Shown: positions 3,687 through 51,840, numbered from the stretch's first letter. The stretch is 64,000 nt of DNA from Blepharisma stoltei ATCC 30299 (GCA_965603825.1 CBFDEM010000035.1:62001-126000); one strand, 5' to 3'. Made by a program: numbers and translations. The notes: generated from the sequence alone by a model not told the origin.

Positions 3687-4667
3687 TTAGTCCTTTACTC
3701 TAGGTTGATAAAAAAGCAGATTTTTCAGCAGCATATTAATCAACCCTTGGCCCTGTTGTGAGCCTATCTTAGCAGCATCCTGCGCAATCTTCGAAAGCTG
3801 GTTTTTTTCTCCTCCATGCATTGCCCATGGTCCTCTTCCCCCTCTGCCTTGTCTTTCAAACCTTTCTAATTTTTCTGATAAATCCGCAATAGCTGAATTC
3901 GCGTAATCTTTATTTTTAAGCAATGTGGACGAACTTAAGGTCTGTGTCCAGTATTTATTCCACAAAAGATCCAAAATATTTGTATCCATTGATGACTTAA
4001 AAATCGTATGTTCTAAGGTATAATAATGCTTATAATGAACGCCAAAATCTTCGATTTTATTTAGCGGAATATGCTGGTATTCTGACTCTTCAGCTTCAGG
4101 GGGGTGATAATTGTCAGTAAAAGTCCTGAAGCAGCCAATTTCGACCTTTCCGGAAGAAATTGTTCTGATTGGGTCTATTACAATAGCAAGATAAGGATCT
4201 TCAGCTTGCTGGTGGAGTTTTTGGGTATTTACGTCAATTCCTGATAGCCAGCAGCCGTAGCCTGGGTGGCTGTGATACCAGCCACAGGTGCCTTCAGTTT
4301 TGCCTACACTTTCTCCCATAGTAACATGATTAACCATATATTCATTAGCGCTTGCCCCTGCATTTACTCTGGTTTCGGTTCCTTCGACTGGTAGCCCAAA
4401 TGCGTCTAATACAATGAATTCTCTGCCAATAACTTTACCTTGCATTAAGCCCATGACTTCAATATTCCCTCCTGAGACTGCATGCATGACCATCTTGATT
4501 AGGGCTACAGCAGAAATACGGACTTTTGTGAAATAGCGCTCATCAGAAGTCCAAGGGTGCTGGTCGAGTAAACGGTCGTTGGCGTCTTCGTCGAAACGGT
4601 AGACGTTGACTTCTTCAGCTGAAAGCATAACTGAGTTCCAAATCCTGTTGCTTGTCGAACTCTCCAT
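3687..4667 (-). CDS. COPS5: COP9 signalosome subunit 5 (JAMM/MPN+ deneddylase)
   Basis: [60 protein letters not shown]. Confidence 0.97.
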
Positions 4668-4670
4668 TTA

Positions 4671-5570
4671 TTAAGAAATTAAATTTAGCTTTTTATCTTT
4701 GCTTTCTGGAGCTTGTTTGGCTTCAATTCTAACTACAGGCTCAGCTATCAAAATATTGAATATTGATAAAGAATTTGAACAAACCCCACAGATTGCTACG
4801 AAAATATGGCTCATCCCTTTCGTCCATGGAAAATTTAGAGCTTTTGCAAGCATGAGGAATCTTAATATTGTAACAATAATATCGATTTTTTTAAATCTCA
4901 GTTCACGTCTGCAATCAATTAAATTTTCAACTAATTTCTGATATTTTTCATCTTTCTCGTGAATCACTTTTGTCGAATTTTCTTGAAGGATATCAGTCGC
5001 TGCCTTAATATGTTTATTAGTTCTTATTGCTGTAATAAAATCAATGGTAAATTGTAGTATGCACCTTGCTATGCAAGAAATGTCTTTAGTGTCTTTTCAT
5101 CTAATATTGGCTGTAGATATGAATTTGCTTATAATTCCAATATCAGCGAGCCAAACTAGGTTGTCTAGAATATAATAAACAGTGCTAGCAAAATGTGCCA
5201 GAATTCTCAAAATTTTTACAAAATCAAGCGTCCGGTTTGTAGTCCAAATTTTTTCAATTACGTTGAGCTCGTCAAAAAACATAAGGACTCTCATCAATTT
5301 TCGCCCATTTTTCATAGATTTTTCGATTTCGTGGAAATTTTTGACTTTTATTGGTCATTCTTGGATTTTGTTTGCCTTTAAGTAGTCAAACATAGTGAGT
5401 TTATAAAGCTCAGAGGAGTATTGGGCTAGGGCTAGTAGTTTTTCTTTCCCTTTTGTGGTTCTCATTACATGGCTTATTGAATTAGAAGTGATAGATACAA
5501 AAAGGCCAGCAGGGGAAACTGCTGTATTAATAAACTTAGGGATATCTTGTAAAGTGCTGCTTCTTTTCAT
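4671..5570 (-). CDS. PEX11: Peroxisomal biogenesis factor PEX11 family protein
   Basis: Three in-frame ORFs joined by TGA5355 and TGA5097; TTKGKEKLLALAQY and NGRKLMR motifs, YYILDNLVWL, C-terminal hydrophobic helix. Confidence 0.75.
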
Positions 5571-5803
5571 GTCTATCAACGGTAATTAATTATTCCAATG
5601 ATAAGTTTATTGATATCGCACAAATATGTCTTTTCTTATTTGTTGCTTATAAATCACAGTAATATTTGTCTAGAAAAGGGTGAAATTAATAGGGGAATTT
5701 TAAAAATAACGGATAAACTTATTGTAAGATTTTTGATAGGAAATTAAATAGAAATCATAAGTAAAATAAATCTAAATTATGGGATTAATTATTCAAATAC
5801 AAA

Positions 5804-6637
5804 TTATGGATAATTTAGGTTTCTGGGGTAATTAGCCTGCAGAGTCTTGGCTTTGCAGATGGGCTTATTTGGATTATATTTGGAAACGCAAGGCAAATCA
5901 GCTAACGTATGCATGATTGGCTGTTTGTTTAGGTCTTCTCCTAAAAGACTATGATTTCTTCTGTAGTCTTTTATATTTTTCGCAATTTTCTTTCATTTTT
6001 CTTGCTTTTTTTTCTTTTTCTCAGCTAAAGACAGTTCAATACTTTTTTGACCGGAAGGCTTAGACAAATTTAAATCGGTTTTTGTAAAATCATTATGGTT
6101 TTGATGTTTCACCGATTTTAATCTATCATAAATAAGTTTGCTAAACTTATTTAAATTTTCTTGTTTAATTCAATTTAAATTGTTTATGCTTCCATCGTCC
6201 TCTTCTGCATCAAAATCATATAAATTTTCCCAAATAACAGTACTGAAATTTGTCCTTTTTTTAAAAATGTGATGATTTGGGCTGTTCATAAAATTTATAT
6301 CTAGAGCTGTATCATTTGAAAAATATCTATTATGATTGCCTTTAAAGCAAGATTTTATATATGATGAGCAGTCTCCAGACTTAAGGTTTTTCAAAGAATC
6401 AAAATTTTTTGGAAATTTCGGTTTTCAATGAACTCTTATGGATGATTTTTTGTGGAATGTTTCTTTCCTTTGCATATGCCGTAATAGTTTTAAATCTTTT
6501 AAAGGGTGCATATTATTCAAATTTTGTGCCTTTTCCACCATCTGCAAATGCTTTTTATCATTTATTTTCGCTTTTTCTCTATCAAGCTTCCCTTTTTCCT
6601 CACTTTCCCACTGCTTAAAAACTGGATTTTCTGACAT
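5804..6637 (-). CDS. Hypothetical basic protein (~277 aa)
   Basis: ORFs 6425-6709 and 6170-6394 in frame; readthrough of three TGA to TAA at 5804. Confidence 0.65.
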
Positions 6638-6668
6638 AAATTTTTTTCTTAAATTAATCTTTATTAAC

Positions 6669-7574
6669 TTAATTATTTTGCTGGGCGTCTTTCTCGTCAT
6701 GACTTTCAATAGTCAGTCTTAAAGCTGCAGTTGATGGCCTATTCAATTGTGCTCTTGGTGTAAACAGAACTTTAGAAGAAGCAGTGTTTTCCGTCTTATA
6801 AAGCCCAGAGCCTGTTGTATGTTTCCCATAAAATCTATTTTTTTGCAGCTTGTGGGCGTTTTTCTGTTCAGCTTTCAGGTTTTGGTATCTTTTTAGTAAA
6901 CTTTCCATTTCAGCTGCACGCAGTTTTTTAAGCTCATCAAAGCCTTTGCCAGCTTTTAATTTAAATGCTTCTAGCTCGTGTTCGTGCCTTTTGCTAAGAG
7001 TTGACAAGGCTAAAGAAATTTGGGTGTCTCTGTCCTTTCCCCAGTCTTTTTTTTCGTTTTCTTCAAGGTCAATCATTTGTTGTTGGATTGCATGGGCTTC
7101 GACGTATTCTTTGTTTCTTACAAGGGTATCTTGGATTCTTTTAAGGTTTAAATATTCTGAGGAGTGCTTAGGAATTATTGGAATTGACTCTTCAAGGCTT
7201 TTCTTCGTGGTTTCGAACTCATTTTCTTGTTTTCCCTTCATCTGCTGCTCCATTTCTTTGCAGTTTTCTTTATAAGTATTCATACGGTTATCCCAGTCAT
7301 CATTGAATGCTTTGAATTCTTCTTCAAAAGTGGTTTCTAAATCAGCGGCTTCTTTGGCTTGTCTTTCTGAAAGCTCGTCTTCACGCCTCTGTTTTTGTTC
7401 AGCTTTGAAATGGAGGATTCTTTGATGGACTTTTTCAGCTTCCAGAAACTCTCCTGATTTCTCATAGGTGCTTCTTTGGGCTTCTAATTGTTTTCTATAT
7501 AAGTTTTACATTATTTCGTCAGTTTCGTCTGAAGATCCTAATCCAAGTGGTGGAACTAAGCTATCGCTCTCCAT
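6669..7574 (-). CDS. Coiled-coil protein, one 15-nt intron
   Basis: ATG 7574; removing intron 7495-7509 restores frame into ORF 6669-7283; E/K/Q-rich heptads. Confidence 0.8.
7495..7509 (-). other. 15-nt spliceosomal intron GTAAAACTTATATAG
   Basis: GT..AG, A at position 10, contains the only in-frame TAA interrupting the CDS. Confidence 0.85.
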
Positions 7575-7778
7575 TAATTTTATTACTTTAAGCCATTATT
7601 TAATTTAAATATTAAACACTGATAAAGATTTTTGGTGTCTTTGAAGAGAAAATTGATAAAGAATGATATTTATATTGAAAAATAGAGCTGAAATATAAAA
7701 AAGAATATAAATTTAGATGGGTTTACTGACAAGAATATTTAGATACGATTAAATTATAAACAAAATACGATAATTAAA

Positions 7779-45616: not shown

Positions 45617-46969
45617 TTAATTATCACAGATATTTACATTTGCTTTAACTACATTTATTATTTTTCTTGGATTTTTCATAGGTGCAAAATTTGTTGATAA
45701 AATAATAGTTTTCCTGGCTTGCAAAATATCAGAATCACCCATTAAGCTTTGGCTCCTATGGTTTACTTCTTCTATCTCTCTGTCGCTATTTTTTGCTGTA
45801 GAGCTTCTTTTTGCTTTGCATAAAGTAGAAAGCCAAGGATGATCTAAGGCTTTTTTTGGTGTTAATCTTTTATTAGGCTGAGTATCTGTTAAGTTTTGTA
45901 TTAAATTTATGGCATTTTTAGAAATTTTCTTCCAAACCTCATCACGATAACTTATCAAACAGTCCCTATTCCTTAAAAGCACTCCTTCAGCGGATTTGCT
46001 GAAAAATGGCATATGCCCAGACAGTAATACATAAAGTATAATGCCAGCTGAAAATACATCGGCTTCTACCCCATATGAGCATTTTCTTAAAATTTCTGGG
46101 GCTATATATCCAGGGGATCCACATCTTAAGGTCAAATTTTCATTAGTGACTTCGGCAGCTAGGCCAAAATCAGCTAGCTTAAAATTATAATCATTGTTTT
46201 TAGATATCATAAGAATGTTTTCTGGCTTGATATCTCTATGCACAACGCCGCATGATTGGGTATAACTAAGGACTTTTAATAACTTCTTGGAAAATTTGAT
46301 AACTGTGGACTCAGGTAACGATCCTTTTTCAAGAATTCTTGAATACAAATCTCCACCTTTTACGTAGTCTAAAACTAGGTAAATGTTATGTGGGCTCTCA
46401 TAGACTCTATGAAGCTTAATGATATTTGGATGATTCAGCTTTCTCATTATCTTAATTTCATTTATCAAATTTTCTAAGTTAATTTTGCTCTTTTGGATTT
46501 TCTTTTTACTGACTTTTTTAATCGCAAATTTTTTAGAGTCTTGAATCCTTACACCTAAATGGACAACTGAAGAATTCCCACTGCCAATTTGCTGGCTGAT
46601 CTGATAGTCGTCTTCAATATCAGACATAATGCAAATACTAGATAAGCAGTCAACCCATTTGTCTAGCTCACTGCTAGATTTTACATAAAAATCTTTCGAT
46701 GAGTTTTTATGCCCAAGGGAAAAACCATACAGTTTTTCATCTTGGTTTTCGTCAATGAAAGGGTTTAAGGGCTTCCATTCTAGCTTAGCCATTTTTGCCT
46801 TTTGCTTTGAGCTGGTTCACCTTACAAGAGATTTTCCTATAACAGTATAAAATTTTTCCTGAAATAATCCGGATTTAAGGTCAAAGAGGCTACCTTCAAA
46901 AAAAGTGGGCTCGTTAGAAGAAATATAAGGAGCCCAAAAATGATCGGTACCACAAGAATTTGAATCCAT
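45617..46969 (-). CDS. PH-like domain plus CAMK-group Ser/Thr protein kinase
   Basis: GSGNSS, FAIK, HRDIKPEN, DFG, CGSPGYIAPE; PH-type FYVKSSSELDKWVDCL; extended via TGA to ATG 46969. Confidence 0.93.
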
Positions 46970-47473
46970 TAATTCAAATATTGAATTCATAATAATATTA
47001 ATATTTTATTTTGATCAGAATTCATGTTGAAGTATTAAACGTGCTTTAAACCTAAAATAATGATAAGCAATAACTGCTATTATACTAACTATGCATTTAT
47101 TTTTAATTTTTATATGCAATAGGTCTTCTTTCTGGAAAGAGATAATATTATCAATGACAATTTTTTTATAAAAAATGTAATTATTAGCTCTTATTTTTAT
47201 ATCGAAAATAAATAGGTTTTCCTATAAATTTATCTAATAATAAGATAATCCAAAATAGTTACAAGTATATGAATAAAACTTCATATTATTTCTTAAATGC
47301 TTTAAATTATTAAGCGAAATTAACATTATTTCAATAAAGTATTATATTTAAAATGGCAAACCTAAATGAAGCTATGCGTTAAGATATTAAAACTTCAAAG
47401 TCTTGCTAATTATAAAATTCATATAAATTCACTTTGTGATTTAATTTATTTATATATCTTTAACTTATAGACA

Positions 47474-49453
47474 CTATATTTCTTTGCATATAAGACTTTT
47501 CATAGCTCCTAACTGTGACATAATCCCTTGAATGTCATCTTGACTTACCTGAAACTCAGATAGCGTCAAGTAAAACATTTCAGCATAGCAATTGAATTCT
47601 CTCTCATTAATTCCATAATTATGATGCGCTGTCCTCAATCTTCCTCTTAGCTCCAAATTCAAATTTCCACTAAAAATCCTAAACATCCCTTTCACAATCC
47701 CCTGAAAGCTCTCAATTTTTGAGTCTTTAAAATATTTATTCAAAATTTCGCAGCCTAGAACTTTATTATAAAGCGAAATAATAAATTTACTCCAAAAACC
47801 CTCCCCTCCGTATTTATTCATCAAGCTTTCTCTTTTCTTTTTAATTTTATTGACACTTTGCTTTAGCTCTTCATTTTGTTCTGCAGCTTCTGAAAAATAT
47901 CTCATTTTTGTACAAATAAATGGGTCGTTAGAAGGACTTTGGTCACGGTTTTTTGAGCGAGATGTAGATATTGGGGTTAAATCTAATATCGGGACAAAGT
48001 TTTTGCAGGTTTTTAAACAAGCTGCTTCATCCTGAATTATAGGAGAAAATTCAACATTTATATCTTGATTTTTCGTGCTTTTTTGTGTATTTAAACAGTC
48101 GATTTTTTCGTTCATTTGTTTGAATTTTTCATAAATATTTTTCATTTTGATGCTTTCTTTTCTTTTTTTCGCTAAATTTAGCCTGTCGACCCTAAGCATT
48201 ATTTTTGCGCAATTTGGATGATTAATATCACTTGTGCGGGTTTCTGTAGTTTGTGACCTATCAGAAGTATCGATTCCAGATATTTTAAGTGGGAGTTTAA
48301 TTCTTTTTGTTTTTTCTAAAGGCATTGATTGATCAATTCAATGTTCTCGGCAGTCCAGTAAAAATCATTTATTATTAATATCCTTCACAAAATCAAGAAC
48401 AAGCCCTTTTACTGTTTTTTTAAATACATGATAAGTAAAAAAATCAGCAATTTGTTCAACCATAAGCTCAATGTCATCGATTTTTACAAAACTTTCACTC
48501 GCAACGCAGCTGGCGATATTTTTTGTGTCAACAATATATTCTTTGAAATTATTTGTGTGTGCAGCTATATTTACTTCTGCTAAATTATCGTAGCTTCTAA
48601 CAGATTTTGTATCATTTCCAAAAGTTTTAAAAATATCATCTTTATGGGCTTTATTCTTTAGTTTGCAAGAAGCATGGAGATCTGGCAAATTTTTATCATT
48701 TTTCATTCGAATTGGAAAATGTTTTATTGGATTAGATGATGTTGCTATAGGCCATTGGGTAGCAGAATATCTGCAAATAGCATGCTTTGATTTTTTAGTT
48801 GACAAGCTTGAAGAATGGTGATGATGGAGCTCTTTTTTTGTGGCTAGTTTTTTGTTAATTATAGTGAAATATTTGTTTTTTTCTCCTTTTCTCCATAACA
48901 CCCTTGTAACTGAGGCAGGATTTGCGTTACTTTGTATGAAAAATTGTATCAAGCTATTATCGCCGGCTGATTTTCATAATTTTGCAACTGTTTCTTTTGA
49001 GAATGCAACTGTGATTTCTTTATTAGAATTTTTATAGCAATAGCATGGATATCCTACACTATTACTTTCATTAGTAAAGCTAAAAAATTCATTTTCTGTG
49101 CATTCTCTTGATTCAATTAAATTATTTTGGTTTGCTTTAATTAGCATAAAAGATGGCAAAGATTCTGATTTTATAAGGGTCGCAGGAATATTTATATTTA
49201 GTCGAGCTGAATTTGCATATGCCGCCAGCAAGCTAAAAAAATTAATTTCTTTGTGATTAGGAGGTTTTGGAAGAAGATCATTAATCCTACTAATCATGCT
49301 GTTCCAACTGACATCAGTCCCAACGCTGCTAAGGATTTTATTTGATTCAGCCAATAAGTGCTTTAATTCAAGGCTAAAGTCAGGGATTTTGCTTTGATCG
49401 TTTTGATTCTGGTGAAAATCGTTGAGGTGTTCTAGTATCCTTGGAATATCCAT
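47474..49453 (-). CDS. Multidomain protein (~659 aa): putative ATP-grasp-like N-terminus plus C-terminal truncated (2/2) haemoglobin
   Basis: Three in-frame ORFs joined by TGA; globin SLMNKYGG..LYNKVL..LNKYF..LRTAH..GINEREF..TL at ~47477-47830. Confidence 0.8.
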
Positions 49454-49797
49454 TTTACAAAGAAATGGCAAGCAAGTAATCTATTTTGAAACTCACAATT
49501 TTAAATAACCTCGTTTCAAAATTTAATTGATTAATTTTGTGATTTGAGACGTTTCTATAATTAAAAATATAAAATAAATTTTAATTTTTGATTAAATTAT
49601 TTCAGTGATTGCTGGCTGAAATGGTATAAATCGATTTTAATAAAAAAAAATTTGCCTTAATGATAAACTGTATAAGAATTATGAATAAATAATTAAAATT
49701 AGCTCAAAATGAGGAATTAAAATGATTTTAAATTAGATTTTAGCTTATAGTCTAAGAAATTTATATTTAATATAGATTTATCAATAACAATTCAAAA

Positions 49798-51840
49798 CTA
49801 ATGAATAGTTTGACATATTAAACTTTTCATCAGTCTTATTTGCGACATAACCCCTTGCTTATCTTCTTCTTGTATTTTAAACTCAGTTATTGTTTCCTCA
49901 AAAATATCACAATAACAATTAAACTCTACCTCTGTTATTCCTTTCGCATAATGGGCTGCCCTTAACCTTCTCCTTAATTCCAAATTTAAATTCCCTTCAA
50001 TTATTTTAAACATTCCTACTACAATCATTTCAAAGCTTTCTATTTTAGAATCCTTAAAATGCCTATTCAAAATTTCACATGACAAAATTTTTTGATATAA
50101 AGCCACAATAAATTTATTCCAAAATTCAGCTCCGCCATATTTCCTGACTATACTTTGCTGCTTAACTCTGGCTATTTTTACATTGGTTTTCATTTGGTCA
50201 AAATTCTCGACAGCTTCTGCAAAATATTTTTTAATACAAAATTCATTGTCTGGGGTTTGAGTCTGATCAGTTGCTATAAAAGATCTTGATTCGCTTAAAG
50301 GTCGAGTTGAGTTTAATAGAGGATTATCTAAATCTGATGGCTTTTGGCTTGTGAAATGCTTGATATAGTAATTAATACCATCTTGTTTTCCTATGATAAA
50401 TGCACTTCGAGGGGAACGGATTCCACAAGGATGCTTTATTTTTTGATTAATTTTATTTAAGCGGTCAAGAAGCTCTTTTTCAGTCATTGATGTAGACCCA
50501 CTTCTTCTAGGGCGGCTTCTTATTTTAAATGGGCAGGACTGAGGACTCTCGAGCAAAGGACTTTGCTCTTCTGCCGTGAATTTTAAAGTTCTTTTTTCGG
50601 ATTCTGATCTCAGTTTTGGGTTGTCCTTATGAACTTCTATTTTTGGGGAAATTAGAGGATTTTTAGAAGTGTCAATCTTTATAGTAGGTTTTTTCGTTTT
50701 CAATTTTTGCAGTATAGCCTCCGTATAATACTCTCTGCTGTCCAATAAAAACCAAGTATTGTTCCTATCTTTTATAAAATCAATAACTATTCCTTTAAGC
50801 TTATTATTCTGGAACACCTGAGAATCCAAAAAATCAACAATTTCGCCAATCATGGCCTCGATTTCATTAATTACTGCTGAACTTTTACAAGCATAGCAGC
50901 TTTCTGTATTTCTTGTTAATACAAGATAATCCTCGGCTGATTCTTCTTGTCAGTGAGGGGAATAGCGATTTGTGGTAGGGCTGCATGAGTCTAGGTCTTT
51001 ATTTTTATATGATGTTAAAGAATTTTGCCTTTTTTTTCCGTATTGTCCAAATCACTTTAATGGGCAGACAGTTAGGTGTTTTCTTTTATTATTGCGGCCT
51101 TCAGGTAGAGGACTTAATTCATCTTCTGGTGATTGAGATATTACCATTGGGGAGTTAAGAAAAGCTGTGGATCTTTTATTAGGCCGTGGACGTCTAATAG
51201 TAGGATGTGAAGAATTGCTTTGTGATTTATGTAATTTTTTCCCTGCTTTTTTACGGTTACTAATAGTGTAATATTTATTTTTCATTCCTCTTCTCCACAA
51301 AACTCTTGTAATAGCAACTGGATTAGCTTTGCTTTGTATATAGCTCTGCATTACAGCAGAATTAAATGATGAGTTTCATATTTCTAAAGCATTTTCCTTT
51401 GAAAATACAGCTACAGGATTTTTCCCTGCAGTTTTATAGCAGAAAATAGGAAATTCACTCTCATCGTTTATTTCTCTAAAAAATTCTTCCTCTGAGCATT
51501 CCTGAGACTGGATGTATTTTTCTTTCTTTGTTTGCAGCATATACATTTTAGCCTCAAATCTCACAAGTGTTGTAGGGATATTCGCATAAATTTTTGAAGC
51601 ATTTGAGTATTTTGCTAACAAATTGAATAATCCTGGCTCTTTATTTGTTGATTTTGGTAATAAATTATTCAATCTTTTAATCATATTGTTGGATGTGACA
51701 TCAGGACTATAGGCTTGGCGAGTATAAGTGGATTCTGCGATTATATTTTTGAGATCCTCTCCAAAGTTAAATGGGATGCTTTTATTGGTAGAGATCTGAT
51801 GATAATCATTAAGATTCTCTAATATTTTTGGAAGATCCAT
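49798..51840 (-). CDS. Tandem paralogue (~680 aa): ATP-grasp-like region plus truncated haemoglobin
   Basis: Three in-frame ORFs joined by TGA; globin SIVRKYGG..LYQKIL..LNRHF..LRAAH..GITEVEF; aligns with 47474-49453. Confidence 0.8.

Follow-up and report, generated by a model that had tools for sequence, protein, structure and literature searches.

The DNA analysed here is a 64-kb stretch of Blepharisma stoltei ATCC 30299 (contig 35, positions 62001-126000), called the window in the following, within which all coordinates are counted unless another contig is indicated. Its minus strand carries, in one frame, the paralogous genes A and B (Table 1), whose products join an N-terminal domain predicted to adopt an ATP-grasp fold to a C-terminal domain related to the truncated haemoglobins (trHbs). 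B. stoltei decodes UGA as Trp, and the reading frames of the two genes are broken by TGA codons alone, with six internal stops in total. A first-pass annotation of the window had proposed that six open reading frame (ORF) fragments collapse into two paralogous genes of 659 and 680 amino acids (aa) when UGA is read as Trp; the lengths obtained here match exactly, and the product of gene A is identical to the 659-aa protein P0006 of the public protein set. The globin domain of gene B was used as query against the 41.5-Mb, 64-contig somatic genome of B. stoltei, where it detected 63 places. Translated with UGA as Trp, these places include 52 ORFs of 558-710 aa in which the N-terminal and globin domains follow each other as in A and B, 51 of them with an intact globin; the conservation values given below refer to these 52 paralogues.

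The two-gene reading is sound, since several observations agree with it. In the pairwise alignment of A and B, the TGA of gene A in NNK-TGA-FLLD stands opposite the TGG (Trp) of gene B in NNTWFLLD, a position occupied by Trp in 52/52 paralogues. The first TGA codons of the two genes pair with each other, and this position (W160) is a Trp in 47 of the 52 paralogues. TGA-free paralogues located elsewhere in the genome form uninterrupted ORFs of 687 and 662 aa, and in Stentor coeruleus, a ciliate with the standard code, the homologue is one protein of 699 aa. If the TGA codons were true stops, the locus would contain six genes; this alternative is rejected because TGG stands opposite TGA in the alignment, because paralogues without interruption exist and because the Stentor orthologue is encoded in the standard code.

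The proteins are composed, in order, of a short helical N-terminus, an ATP-grasp-fold module split by an insert of about 100 aa, a linker of about 150 aa and the C-terminal globin. The inserts have an isoelectric point (pI) of about 10 and a Lys plus Arg content of 18-20%, the pI of the linkers is 9.6-9.8, and both segments are basic and predicted to be disordered; the linker region contains a CPFKIRxKP motif and an ERLNKVNxKI helix in most paralogues. The conserved N-terminal blocks, the basic low-complexity insert and the poorly conserved linker noticed in the first-pass annotation are thus all present. In the pairwise alignment, A and B are 38-67% identical over the conserved blocks (about 45% for those of the N-terminal domain, 60-67% for the globin), whereas the insert and linker reach 12-20%. 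The ratio of nonsynonymous to synonymous differences (pN/pS), calculated between A and B with saturated synonymous sites, is 0.36 for the globin, about 0.5 for the N-terminal core, 0.71 for the linker and 0.92 for the insert. This pattern, read from the sequences of the two genes, fits purifying selection on the globin and the N-terminal core only, in agreement with the earlier proposal of two selected domains separated by diverging linkers.

Table 1. Coordinates of genes A and B, of their domains and in-frame TGA codons, and of stand-alone trHb loci elsewhere in the genome
Feature	Coordinates	Strand	Remarks
Gene A	47474..49453	-	ATG at 49453; TAG stop 47474-47476; 659 aa with UGA=Trp
Gene A, N-terminal helical region, residues 1-62	49268..49453	-	Conserved, acidic (MDIPxILExLNDxHQ...); low-confidence model
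Gene A, ATP-grasp-fold core, first half, residues 63-197	48863..49267	-	DC4-like; NIPxTL, (F/Y)xYK, W, IQxFIQS, TRVLWR, KYFTIxN
Gene A, first in-frame TGA (Trp)	48974..48976	-	Opposite TGA 51376-51378 of gene B
Gene A, insert, residues 198-300	48554..48862	-	Basic, low-complexity, predicted disordered, pI 9.9; within ATP-grasp fold
Gene A, ATP-grasp-fold core, second half, residues 301-375	48329..48553	-	Helix, then KGLVLDFVKD..NKW(TGA)FLLDCRE
Gene A, in-frame TGA of WFLLD block	48365..48367	-	Invariant Trp; TGG in gene B
Gene A, third in-frame TGA	48338..48340	-	Directly past ATP-grasp-fold core
Gene A, linker, residues 376-520	47894..48328	-	Basic, poorly conserved
Gene A, pre-A helix and globin, residues 521-659	47477..47893	-	Group I trHb; KYGG, Tyr B10, Phe CD1, His F8 in LRTAH
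Gene B	49798..51840	-	ATG at 51840; TAG stop 49798-49800; 680 aa with UGA=Trp
Gene B, ATP-grasp-fold core, first half, residues 62-192	51265..51657	-	DC4-like
Gene B, in-frame TGA (Trp)	51376..51378	-	Pairs with first TGA of gene A
Gene B, insert, residues 193-300	50941..51264	-	Basic, disordered, pI 10.3; two in-frame TGA codons inside
Gene B, in-frame TGA of insert	51052..51054	-	Codon reading
Gene B, in-frame TGA of insert	50950..50952	-	Codon reading
Gene B, ATP-grasp-fold core, second half, residues 301-372	50725..50940	-	KGIVIDFIKDRNNTW(TGG)FLLDSRE
Gene B, linker, residues 373-540	50221..50724	-	Basic; CPFKIRSRP motif and ELLDRLNKINQKI helix
Gene B, pre-A helix and globin, residues 541-680	49801..50220	-	Group I trHb
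Stand-alone trHb loci L037-L042	C18:829279-829635, C41:398437-398784, C38:533025-533381, C32:292994-293350, C54:165901-167130, C11:15365-17303

The C-terminal truncated haemoglobin

Ciliates are known for small, stand-alone truncated haemoglobins whose physiological role is debated. Among PDB sequences, the last 128 aa of gene A match group I trHbs, one of which is the cyanobacterial GlbN (E 2e-6). A profile built from the C-terminal 150 aa of 59 sequences of the family recovered 24 PDB matches, all of them group I trHbs, the best being the trHb of Tetrahymena pyriformis (3aq5, E 8e-12) and HbN of M. tuberculosis (1e-9). Residues 531-680 of gene B (49801-50250) were modelled with AlphaFold2 with a mean predicted local distance difference test (pLDDT) value of 88; in the model, a long pre-A helix precedes the globin helices, which keep the 2/2 helical arrangement. 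When this model was compared to the PDB with Foldseek, each of the 44 best matches was a truncated haemoglobin, those of group I ranking first, and the target-normalised template modelling (TM) scores were 0.75-0.81. Among the checks proposed with the first-pass annotation, the fold comparison recovered trHbs, whereas the Pfam family PF01152 (Bac_globin, cut-off 21 bits) scored below its cut-off for genes A and B and gave no match in the pieces of the window. The same Pfam family reaches 21.2 bits in the paralogue L015 and 13.3 bits in L013, and it matches 6 of 61 distant homologues.

The topological positions of the globin were fixed by alignment to the Tetrahymena trHb and its solved mutants Y25F, Q46E and Q50E. 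The residues were counted over the 52 paralogues, of which 51 are aligned at each position, the 52nd copy being cut short by a TAG. The proximal His F8 is found in 51/51 aligned paralogues and is still at least 90% conserved once distant homologues are added in the 59-sequence alignment. Of the 51 paralogues, 50 have Phe CD1 and 47 have Tyr B10, and the two Gly of the YGG motif are conserved in 51 and 49 paralogues. On the distal side, position E7 is a Phe in 29 paralogues and falls in a deletion of three residues in 22, E11 is Val or Ile in 34 paralogues and E10 is Ile in 50 of 52 genes. As read from the alignment, the residues that hold the haem have been conserved, the polar ones usually found on the distal side (Gln at E7, Gln or Thr at E11) have been lost, and Tyr B10 is predicted to be the sole remaining distal contact for a bound ligand. 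The motifs that had suggested a group I 2/2 globin (KYGG, LY at B9-B10, Phe CD1, LR(T/A)AH and G-I-x4-F) all align with the solved trHbs, and on sequence and predicted structure the C-terminal domain is classified as a divergent member of the group I (TrHb1, or N) 2/2 truncated haemoglobins.

The C-terminal motif MK(S/C)LIC contains a Cys (47486-47488 in gene A) that is kept in 42 of the 52 paralogues. It aligns three residues past His117 of the cyanobacterial GlbN, the residue to which the haem of GlbN is covalently linked.

Concerning the stand-alone globins, eight trHb ORFs of 115-127 aa were detected in the Blepharisma genome, including two tandem pairs. Half of them (4/8) start with a YG..FW block resembling the one in the fusions, and two retain the full KYGG..FW. 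These four differ from the fusions on the distal side, with Val at E7 and Asn or Gln at E11.

The N-terminal ATP-grasp-like domain

The N-terminal domain was modelled with AlphaFold2 from residues 1-385 of the TGA-free paralogue L013. The core (residues of about 70-200 and 320-380) is predicted with pLDDT values of 85-91, the N-terminal helices have a low confidence and residues 204-310 are disordered (pLDDT of about 30). No match to an ATP-grasp or TTL family of Pfam was obtained with the pieces of genes A and B, with the full-length paralogues or with 61 homologues. DUF7225 scored 16.9 bits (cut-off 27) on one piece of the N-domain and was absent from the 61 homologues; this score was rejected as noise.

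The structural comparisons recovered, on one hand, ATP-grasp enzymes and, on the other hand, two subunits of dynein-docking complexes. With VIA-align, the N-domain model is aligned to synapsin (Z 11.3), TTLL11 (10.6), DdlA (10.4) and, more widely, to synapsin, TTLL6/11, Ddl, RimK, LysX and ITPK1 with Z values of 8-11.3 over 150-190 residues of the central and C-terminal subdomains; the Foldseek probabilities for ATP-grasp proteins are 0.9-1.0. The ATP-grasp-like fold of the first-pass annotation is therefore recovered from the predicted model, which has an ATP-grasp fold. The Z values are higher for chain 5K of 9e78 (16.8 over 208 residues) and for chain 7c of 9e5c (15.5), named in the PDB as distal DC4 (ODA dDC4, ODA being the outer dynein arm) and as TbDC65, respectively. 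Foldseek likewise gives E values of 7e-7 and 3e-6 to these two docking subunits vs 8e-3 or weaker to the enzymes. The identification of the first chain agrees with the residues built for dDC4 in the supplement of the paper (11-276, that is 266 residues).

At the sequence level, a profile of 49 N-domains of the family places dDC4 at the top of 177,635 PDB sequences, weakly (E 0.029), with TbDC65 at E 1.9. The profile segment LQrFIqp...llRVhWk aligns with LQKFIFPKGYQNSVIRVVWS of dDC4, and a second collinear block follows (DF/YF...W.LL.C). A profile made of nine N-domains only had no match among PDB sequences. A protein of the euglenid Ploeotia is matched by the family profile at E 5.5e-4, and the neighbours in shape found in the ESM Atlas are unnamed clusters from ciliates and oomycetes. 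The resemblance, mainly structural, suggests that the N-domain belongs to the DC4 family or to a closely related sister group. In Leishmania, dDC4 (LtaP31.0090) is described as an ATP-grasp-like subunit of the docking complex located on the dDC1/dDC2 coiled coil of the outer dynein arm, where it contacts the ODA-alpha heavy chain and where its loss slows swimming (PMC7617938). Other flagellates, Chlamydomonas among them, are reported to possess DC4 orthologues (PMC11971395). Three other Blepharisma proteins of 585-605 aa (P0036, P0049 and P0052) contain a DC4-like N-domain and no detectable globin; they could be plain DC4 orthologues.

The question whether this module is an enzyme or a pseudo-enzyme, left undecided in the first-pass annotation, was considered from the residues of the putative ATP site. 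The family was aligned with the catalytic cores of 12 tubulin tyrosine ligase-like proteins (TTLLs) of the genome using hhalign, with a probability of 6.9% in local mode and no match in global mode. The equivalences of the ATP-site residues derive from this 6.9% alignment and from the motif order, the alignment being a guide to motif order and not evidence of homology. The motifs IPxT, strand Lys, Q-x-[FY]-I, D-F and W-x-L-L-[DE]-C-[KR] are collinear with those of the genome's TTLLs. Among the 52 paralogues, Gln170, Arg184, Trp187, Phe367 and Trp375 are invariant (52/52), Lys142 is conserved in 49 sequences (R in two), Asp366 in 49 (E in three) and Glu382 in 49 (D in two). TTLLs have a glycine-rich loop after the Lys strand, and this loop is missing from the family. 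In the Mg-binding E-x-N, the Asn position is a Lys or Arg in 46/52 paralogues, and the acidic position (379) is D or E in 35/52 and variable in the wider family. The pseudo-enzyme reading is better supported than the enzyme, because of the missing Gly-rich loop, the replacement of Asn by Lys or Arg, the variable acidic position and the structural role of the nearest relative. From these residues, the N-domain is likely a non-catalytic pseudo-enzyme scaffold, which may nevertheless bind nucleotide. The genome also holds a large TTLL repertoire, with at least 57 matches to PF03133 (TTL), none of which is located at the fusion-gene loci.

Family size, arrays and distribution

The first-pass annotation had presented A and B as a tandem pair; they are in fact two of the 52 family genes of this genome, and the architecture is also found in Stentor and in environmental eukaryotes. 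The globin identity among the paralogues is of 42-73%. Head-to-tail arrays contain 17 copies on contig 58 (651-690 kb) and 16 copies on contig 22 (175-213 kb), the two arrays comprising loci L016-L023 and L044-L047. A maximum-likelihood tree was calculated with all 52 fusion proteins, none being omitted. The members of the arrays of contigs 58 and 22 pair one to one in this tree, which indicates that one array was copied as a whole and then maintained. The tree also groups gene B as sister with C12:764872-766923, and gene A with its neighbour C12:767314-769305. Since A and B are each sister to one of the two contig 12 neighbours, the tree places the tandem duplication of A and B before a later duplication of the two-gene block. 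The duplicated unit that can be seen consists of the two genes alone, the kinase that flanks gene A having no close copy beside the contig 12 pair. This flanking gene (45617-47005, minus strand) adjoins gene A and encodes an N-terminally extended CaMK-like Ser/Thr kinase; it has more than 100 relatives in the genome, none of them beside the duplicated contig 12 pair.

Two N-terminally truncated copies occur among the globin loci of the genome. At C36:1044965-1046080 (L028) and C58:840008-840973 (L032), ORFs of 371 and 321 aa comprise the linker and the globin and no N-domain. In one family copy, C22:178819-180651 (in L020), the globin is interrupted by a TAG; the annotated product (P0008) has 610 aa.

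Outside Blepharisma, an exhaustive profile search retrieved 113 cluster representatives, many of them proteins of 490-720 aa with both domains. The Stentor coeruleus protein OMJ86194.1 displays the same architecture, DC4-like domain plus globin, and other homologues come from metagenome assemblies. One metagenome contig with a GC content of about 50% (ERZ27250493 k141_252871, L048) carries at 4264-7629 a tandem pair of 562 and 542 aa with the same architecture. On this contig, a gene for a P4-ATPase (flippase) reads through in-frame TAG and TAA codons; judging from its sequence, the source organism appears to read through TAA and TAG, unlike Blepharisma (UGA=Trp) and Stentor (standard code).

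Proposed role and comparison with known systems

The best explanation of these data, to which we attribute a probability of about one half, is that the fusion proteins are DC4-type ATP-grasp scaffolds tethering a haem globin to the ciliary machinery. The globin would bind haem b, probably in a five-coordinate state since neither His nor Lys is present at E10, and would react with O2, nitric oxide (NO) or redox agents. The ATP-grasp-like module most likely acts as a non-catalytic scaffold, even if it may still bind nucleotide. With the contribution of the disordered basic stretches, it would anchor the haem domain on a structure made of coiled coils or microtubules, the dynein-docking region of the axoneme being the most plausible site. 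The basic insert and linker would suit the binding of acidic tubulin tails or of other acidic partners. A gas- or redox-reactive haem would in this way be placed at a ciliary motor, either as a sensor that tunes the beat or as a local scavenger or buffer of NO and O2. By analogy with the proximal and distal DC4 of trypanosomes, the paralogues may serve different ciliary structures or positions. A narrower version of this scheme is an axonemal haem sensor: the DC4-like module would dock on the docking complex of the outer dynein arm or on another coiled-coil or microtubule site of the cilium, the binding of O2 or NO or a redox change would modify dynein activity and beat, and the paralogues would be specialised by ciliary organelle or by proximal and distal zone. 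This version is speculative and we consider it improbable in its full form.

Several observations weigh against the best explanation. The link to the dDC4 family is weak in sequence and rests mainly on predicted structure, and dDC4 itself has no detectable globin, its chain not being among the 24 PDB matches of the globin profile. The solved structures of the Tetrahymena axoneme are not among the fold matches of the N-domain, so that a location in the ciliate docking complex is purely inferred. More than 50 paralogues in tandem arrays would be unusual for a stoichiometric axonemal subunit. The conservation of Lys142, Gln170, Arg184, Asp366 and Glu382 in the Blepharisma clade leaves room for nucleotide binding or catalysis, and the globins of A and B stay below the Bac_globin cut-off.

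These conserved residues, together with the acidic residue found at position 379 in 35/52 paralogues, the hinge-like Q-x-[FY]-[IV] motif that contains Gln170, the motif order shared with the genome's own TTLLs (hhalign) and Z values of 8-11 to synapsin, TTLL6/11, Ddl, RimK and ITPK1, could point to an active ATP-grasp enzyme regulated by haem, that is a working ligase or kinase (for instance a divergent TTLL-like modifier of tubulin or other proteins) with a globin that switches its activity by O2, NO or redox state. Such an enzyme is nevertheless hardly expected from a family that has no ATP-grasp or TTL match in Pfam, a probability of just 6.9% to TTLLs, no glycine-rich phosphate loop past the Lys strand, a Lys or Arg at the Asn of E-x-N in 46/52 paralogues and an acidic position that is not conserved in the wider family. 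Its closest relative, dDC4, is a structural subunit devoid of even the Asp, and the region of the TTL substrate loop is replaced by the disordered basic insert. Another reading, in which the globin-fold domain has lost its haem and persists as a structural or ligand-binding relic of a purely structural ciliary or cytoskeletal component, would account for Pfam scores at or below the cut-off. It would also account for the loss of the polar residues that ciliate trHbs usually have on the distal side (Gln at E7, Gln or Thr at E11), where Phe or a deletion and Val or Ile are found instead. It is very unlikely given the proximal His of all 51 intact paralogues, at least 90% conserved when distant homologues are included, the retention of Phe CD1 (50) and Tyr B10 (47) and a predicted fold that retains the 2/2 arrangement.

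Finally, the proteins could be soluble haemoproteins present in many copies and without any link to cilia, devoted to bulk cytoplasmic O2 storage, to detoxification of the NO dioxygenase or peroxidase type or to protection against blepharismin photo-oxidation, with an N-domain serving oligomerisation or stability and a copy number reflecting dosage. Families driven by dosage or related to stress typically form large tandem arrays in which duplicates are retained, HbN of M. tuberculosis is among the best matches of the globin profile, and trHbN proteins such as this HbN are NO dioxygenases. The B. stoltei genome paper mentions one 'bacteria-like globin' with a stable constitutive expression (PMC9942806), which is not known to belong to the fusion family. 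We regard this proposal as unlikely: the eight stand-alone trHbs could do that job, and the paralogues are old and diverged, as their globin identity indicates, and not recent dosage copies. Moreover, the N-domain appears to be under purifying selection, and Stentor as well as the distant environmental homologues retain it next to the globin, which argues for a specific role of the fusion.

A known type of ciliate globin is here welded to a probable homologue of a protein that anchors the outer dynein arm. The fusion was retained and, through duplication and divergence, now numbers more than 50 genes. Its main interest is that a link between haem chemistry and ciliary motors becomes testable. 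A truly axonemal tether would be a physical connection from gas or redox state to the ciliary motor and a testable route to the steering of ciliates in oxygen gradients; the axonemal sensor, if true, would moreover provide a direct mechanism, at the level of the motor, for the aerotaxis or the redox and photophobic responses of heterotrichs. The DC4 family, recognised only in 2025, would gain ciliate members besides those of kinetoplastids, judging from structure and from a weak sequence match. For globin biochemistry, the paralogues constitute a natural series of distal-pocket variants in which Tyr B10 is combined with apolar E7 and E11.

Compared with the solved group I trHbs (Tetrahymena pyriformis 3aq5, Paramecium caudatum 1dlw, M. 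tuberculosis HbN 1idr and Chlamydomonas THB1 4xdi), to which its identity is of 12-20%, the globin of the family shows the same 2/2 fold, the Gly-Gly before helix B (KYGG in the family, KLGG in the trHbs), Tyr B10, Phe CD1, His F8 and the following G-I-x4-F. It differs by its position as the C-terminal 120 aa of a protein of 660-680 aa, behind a long pre-A helix, by a Phe or a deletion at E7 and Val or Ile at E11 instead of Gln or Thr, and by the Ile at E10, which leaves no distal His or Lys ligand. The ATP-grasp enzymes (TTL/TTLL, the C domain of synapsin, D-Ala-D-Ala ligase and RimK) share with the N-domain the fold of the central and C-terminal subdomains (Z 8-11) and, for the TTLLs, a collinear order of motifs. 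In contrast to these enzymes, to which it displays no similarity at the profile level, the family lacks the Gly-rich loop, has Lys or Arg in place of the Asn of E-x-N, contains a basic disordered insert of about 100 aa within the fold, and its model matches no N-terminal pre-ATP-grasp subdomain. The trypanosomatid DC4 proteins (Leishmania dDC4 and T. brucei DC65) are the top structural match, over about 208 residues with 14-16% identity and well above the enzymes; they share the blocks LQxFIxP...RVxW and the second collinear block, and DC4 and the family are both devoid of a Pfam ATP-grasp signature. DC4 has neither a detectable globin nor the Asp of the D-F motif, and it occurs as two paralogues (proximal and distal) whereas about 50 are present in Blepharisma. 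The axonemal position and role of DC4 are experimental (PMC7617938, PMC11971395), whereas the family is known here from sequence and models.

Concerning other globin fusions, the first-pass annotation had suggested a globin-coupled sensor. Such sensors, essentially prokaryotic, include HemAT and the globin-coupled diguanylate cyclases and kinases, and like the present family they join a haem globin covalently to a second module. They combine an N-terminal 3/3 globin of the S family with a C-terminal transmitter, whereas here the globin is C-terminal, 2/2 and of the T family and the N-terminal module is a scaffold-like ATP-grasp domain. No Pfam match to a transmitter domain (MCP, GGDEF, kinase, cyclase and others) was found in genes A and B or in their paralogues, and this suggestion was abandoned on the three grounds of globin class, domain order and missing transmitter. 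Androglobin also embeds a globin in a large multidomain protein and has been linked to ciliogenesis, but its globin is a circularly permuted 3/3 one and is accompanied by a calpain-like domain. As for the architecture itself, of which no description was known to the first-pass annotation, a literature search found no paper naming a DC4-like or ATP-grasp partner domain or the fusion family. Chimeric T1 globins of ciliates are reportedly mentioned in the survey of microbial eukaryote globins by Vinogradov and colleagues. The same statement, that chimeric, multi-unit/multidomain T1 (group 1) truncated globins occur in ciliates, is made in a review (PMC7475203). These statements on multidomain ciliate TrHb1s name no DC4-like or ATP-grasp partner. 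The fusion is a chimeric truncated haemoglobin, of a kind already known, with an unexpected cilia-related partner.

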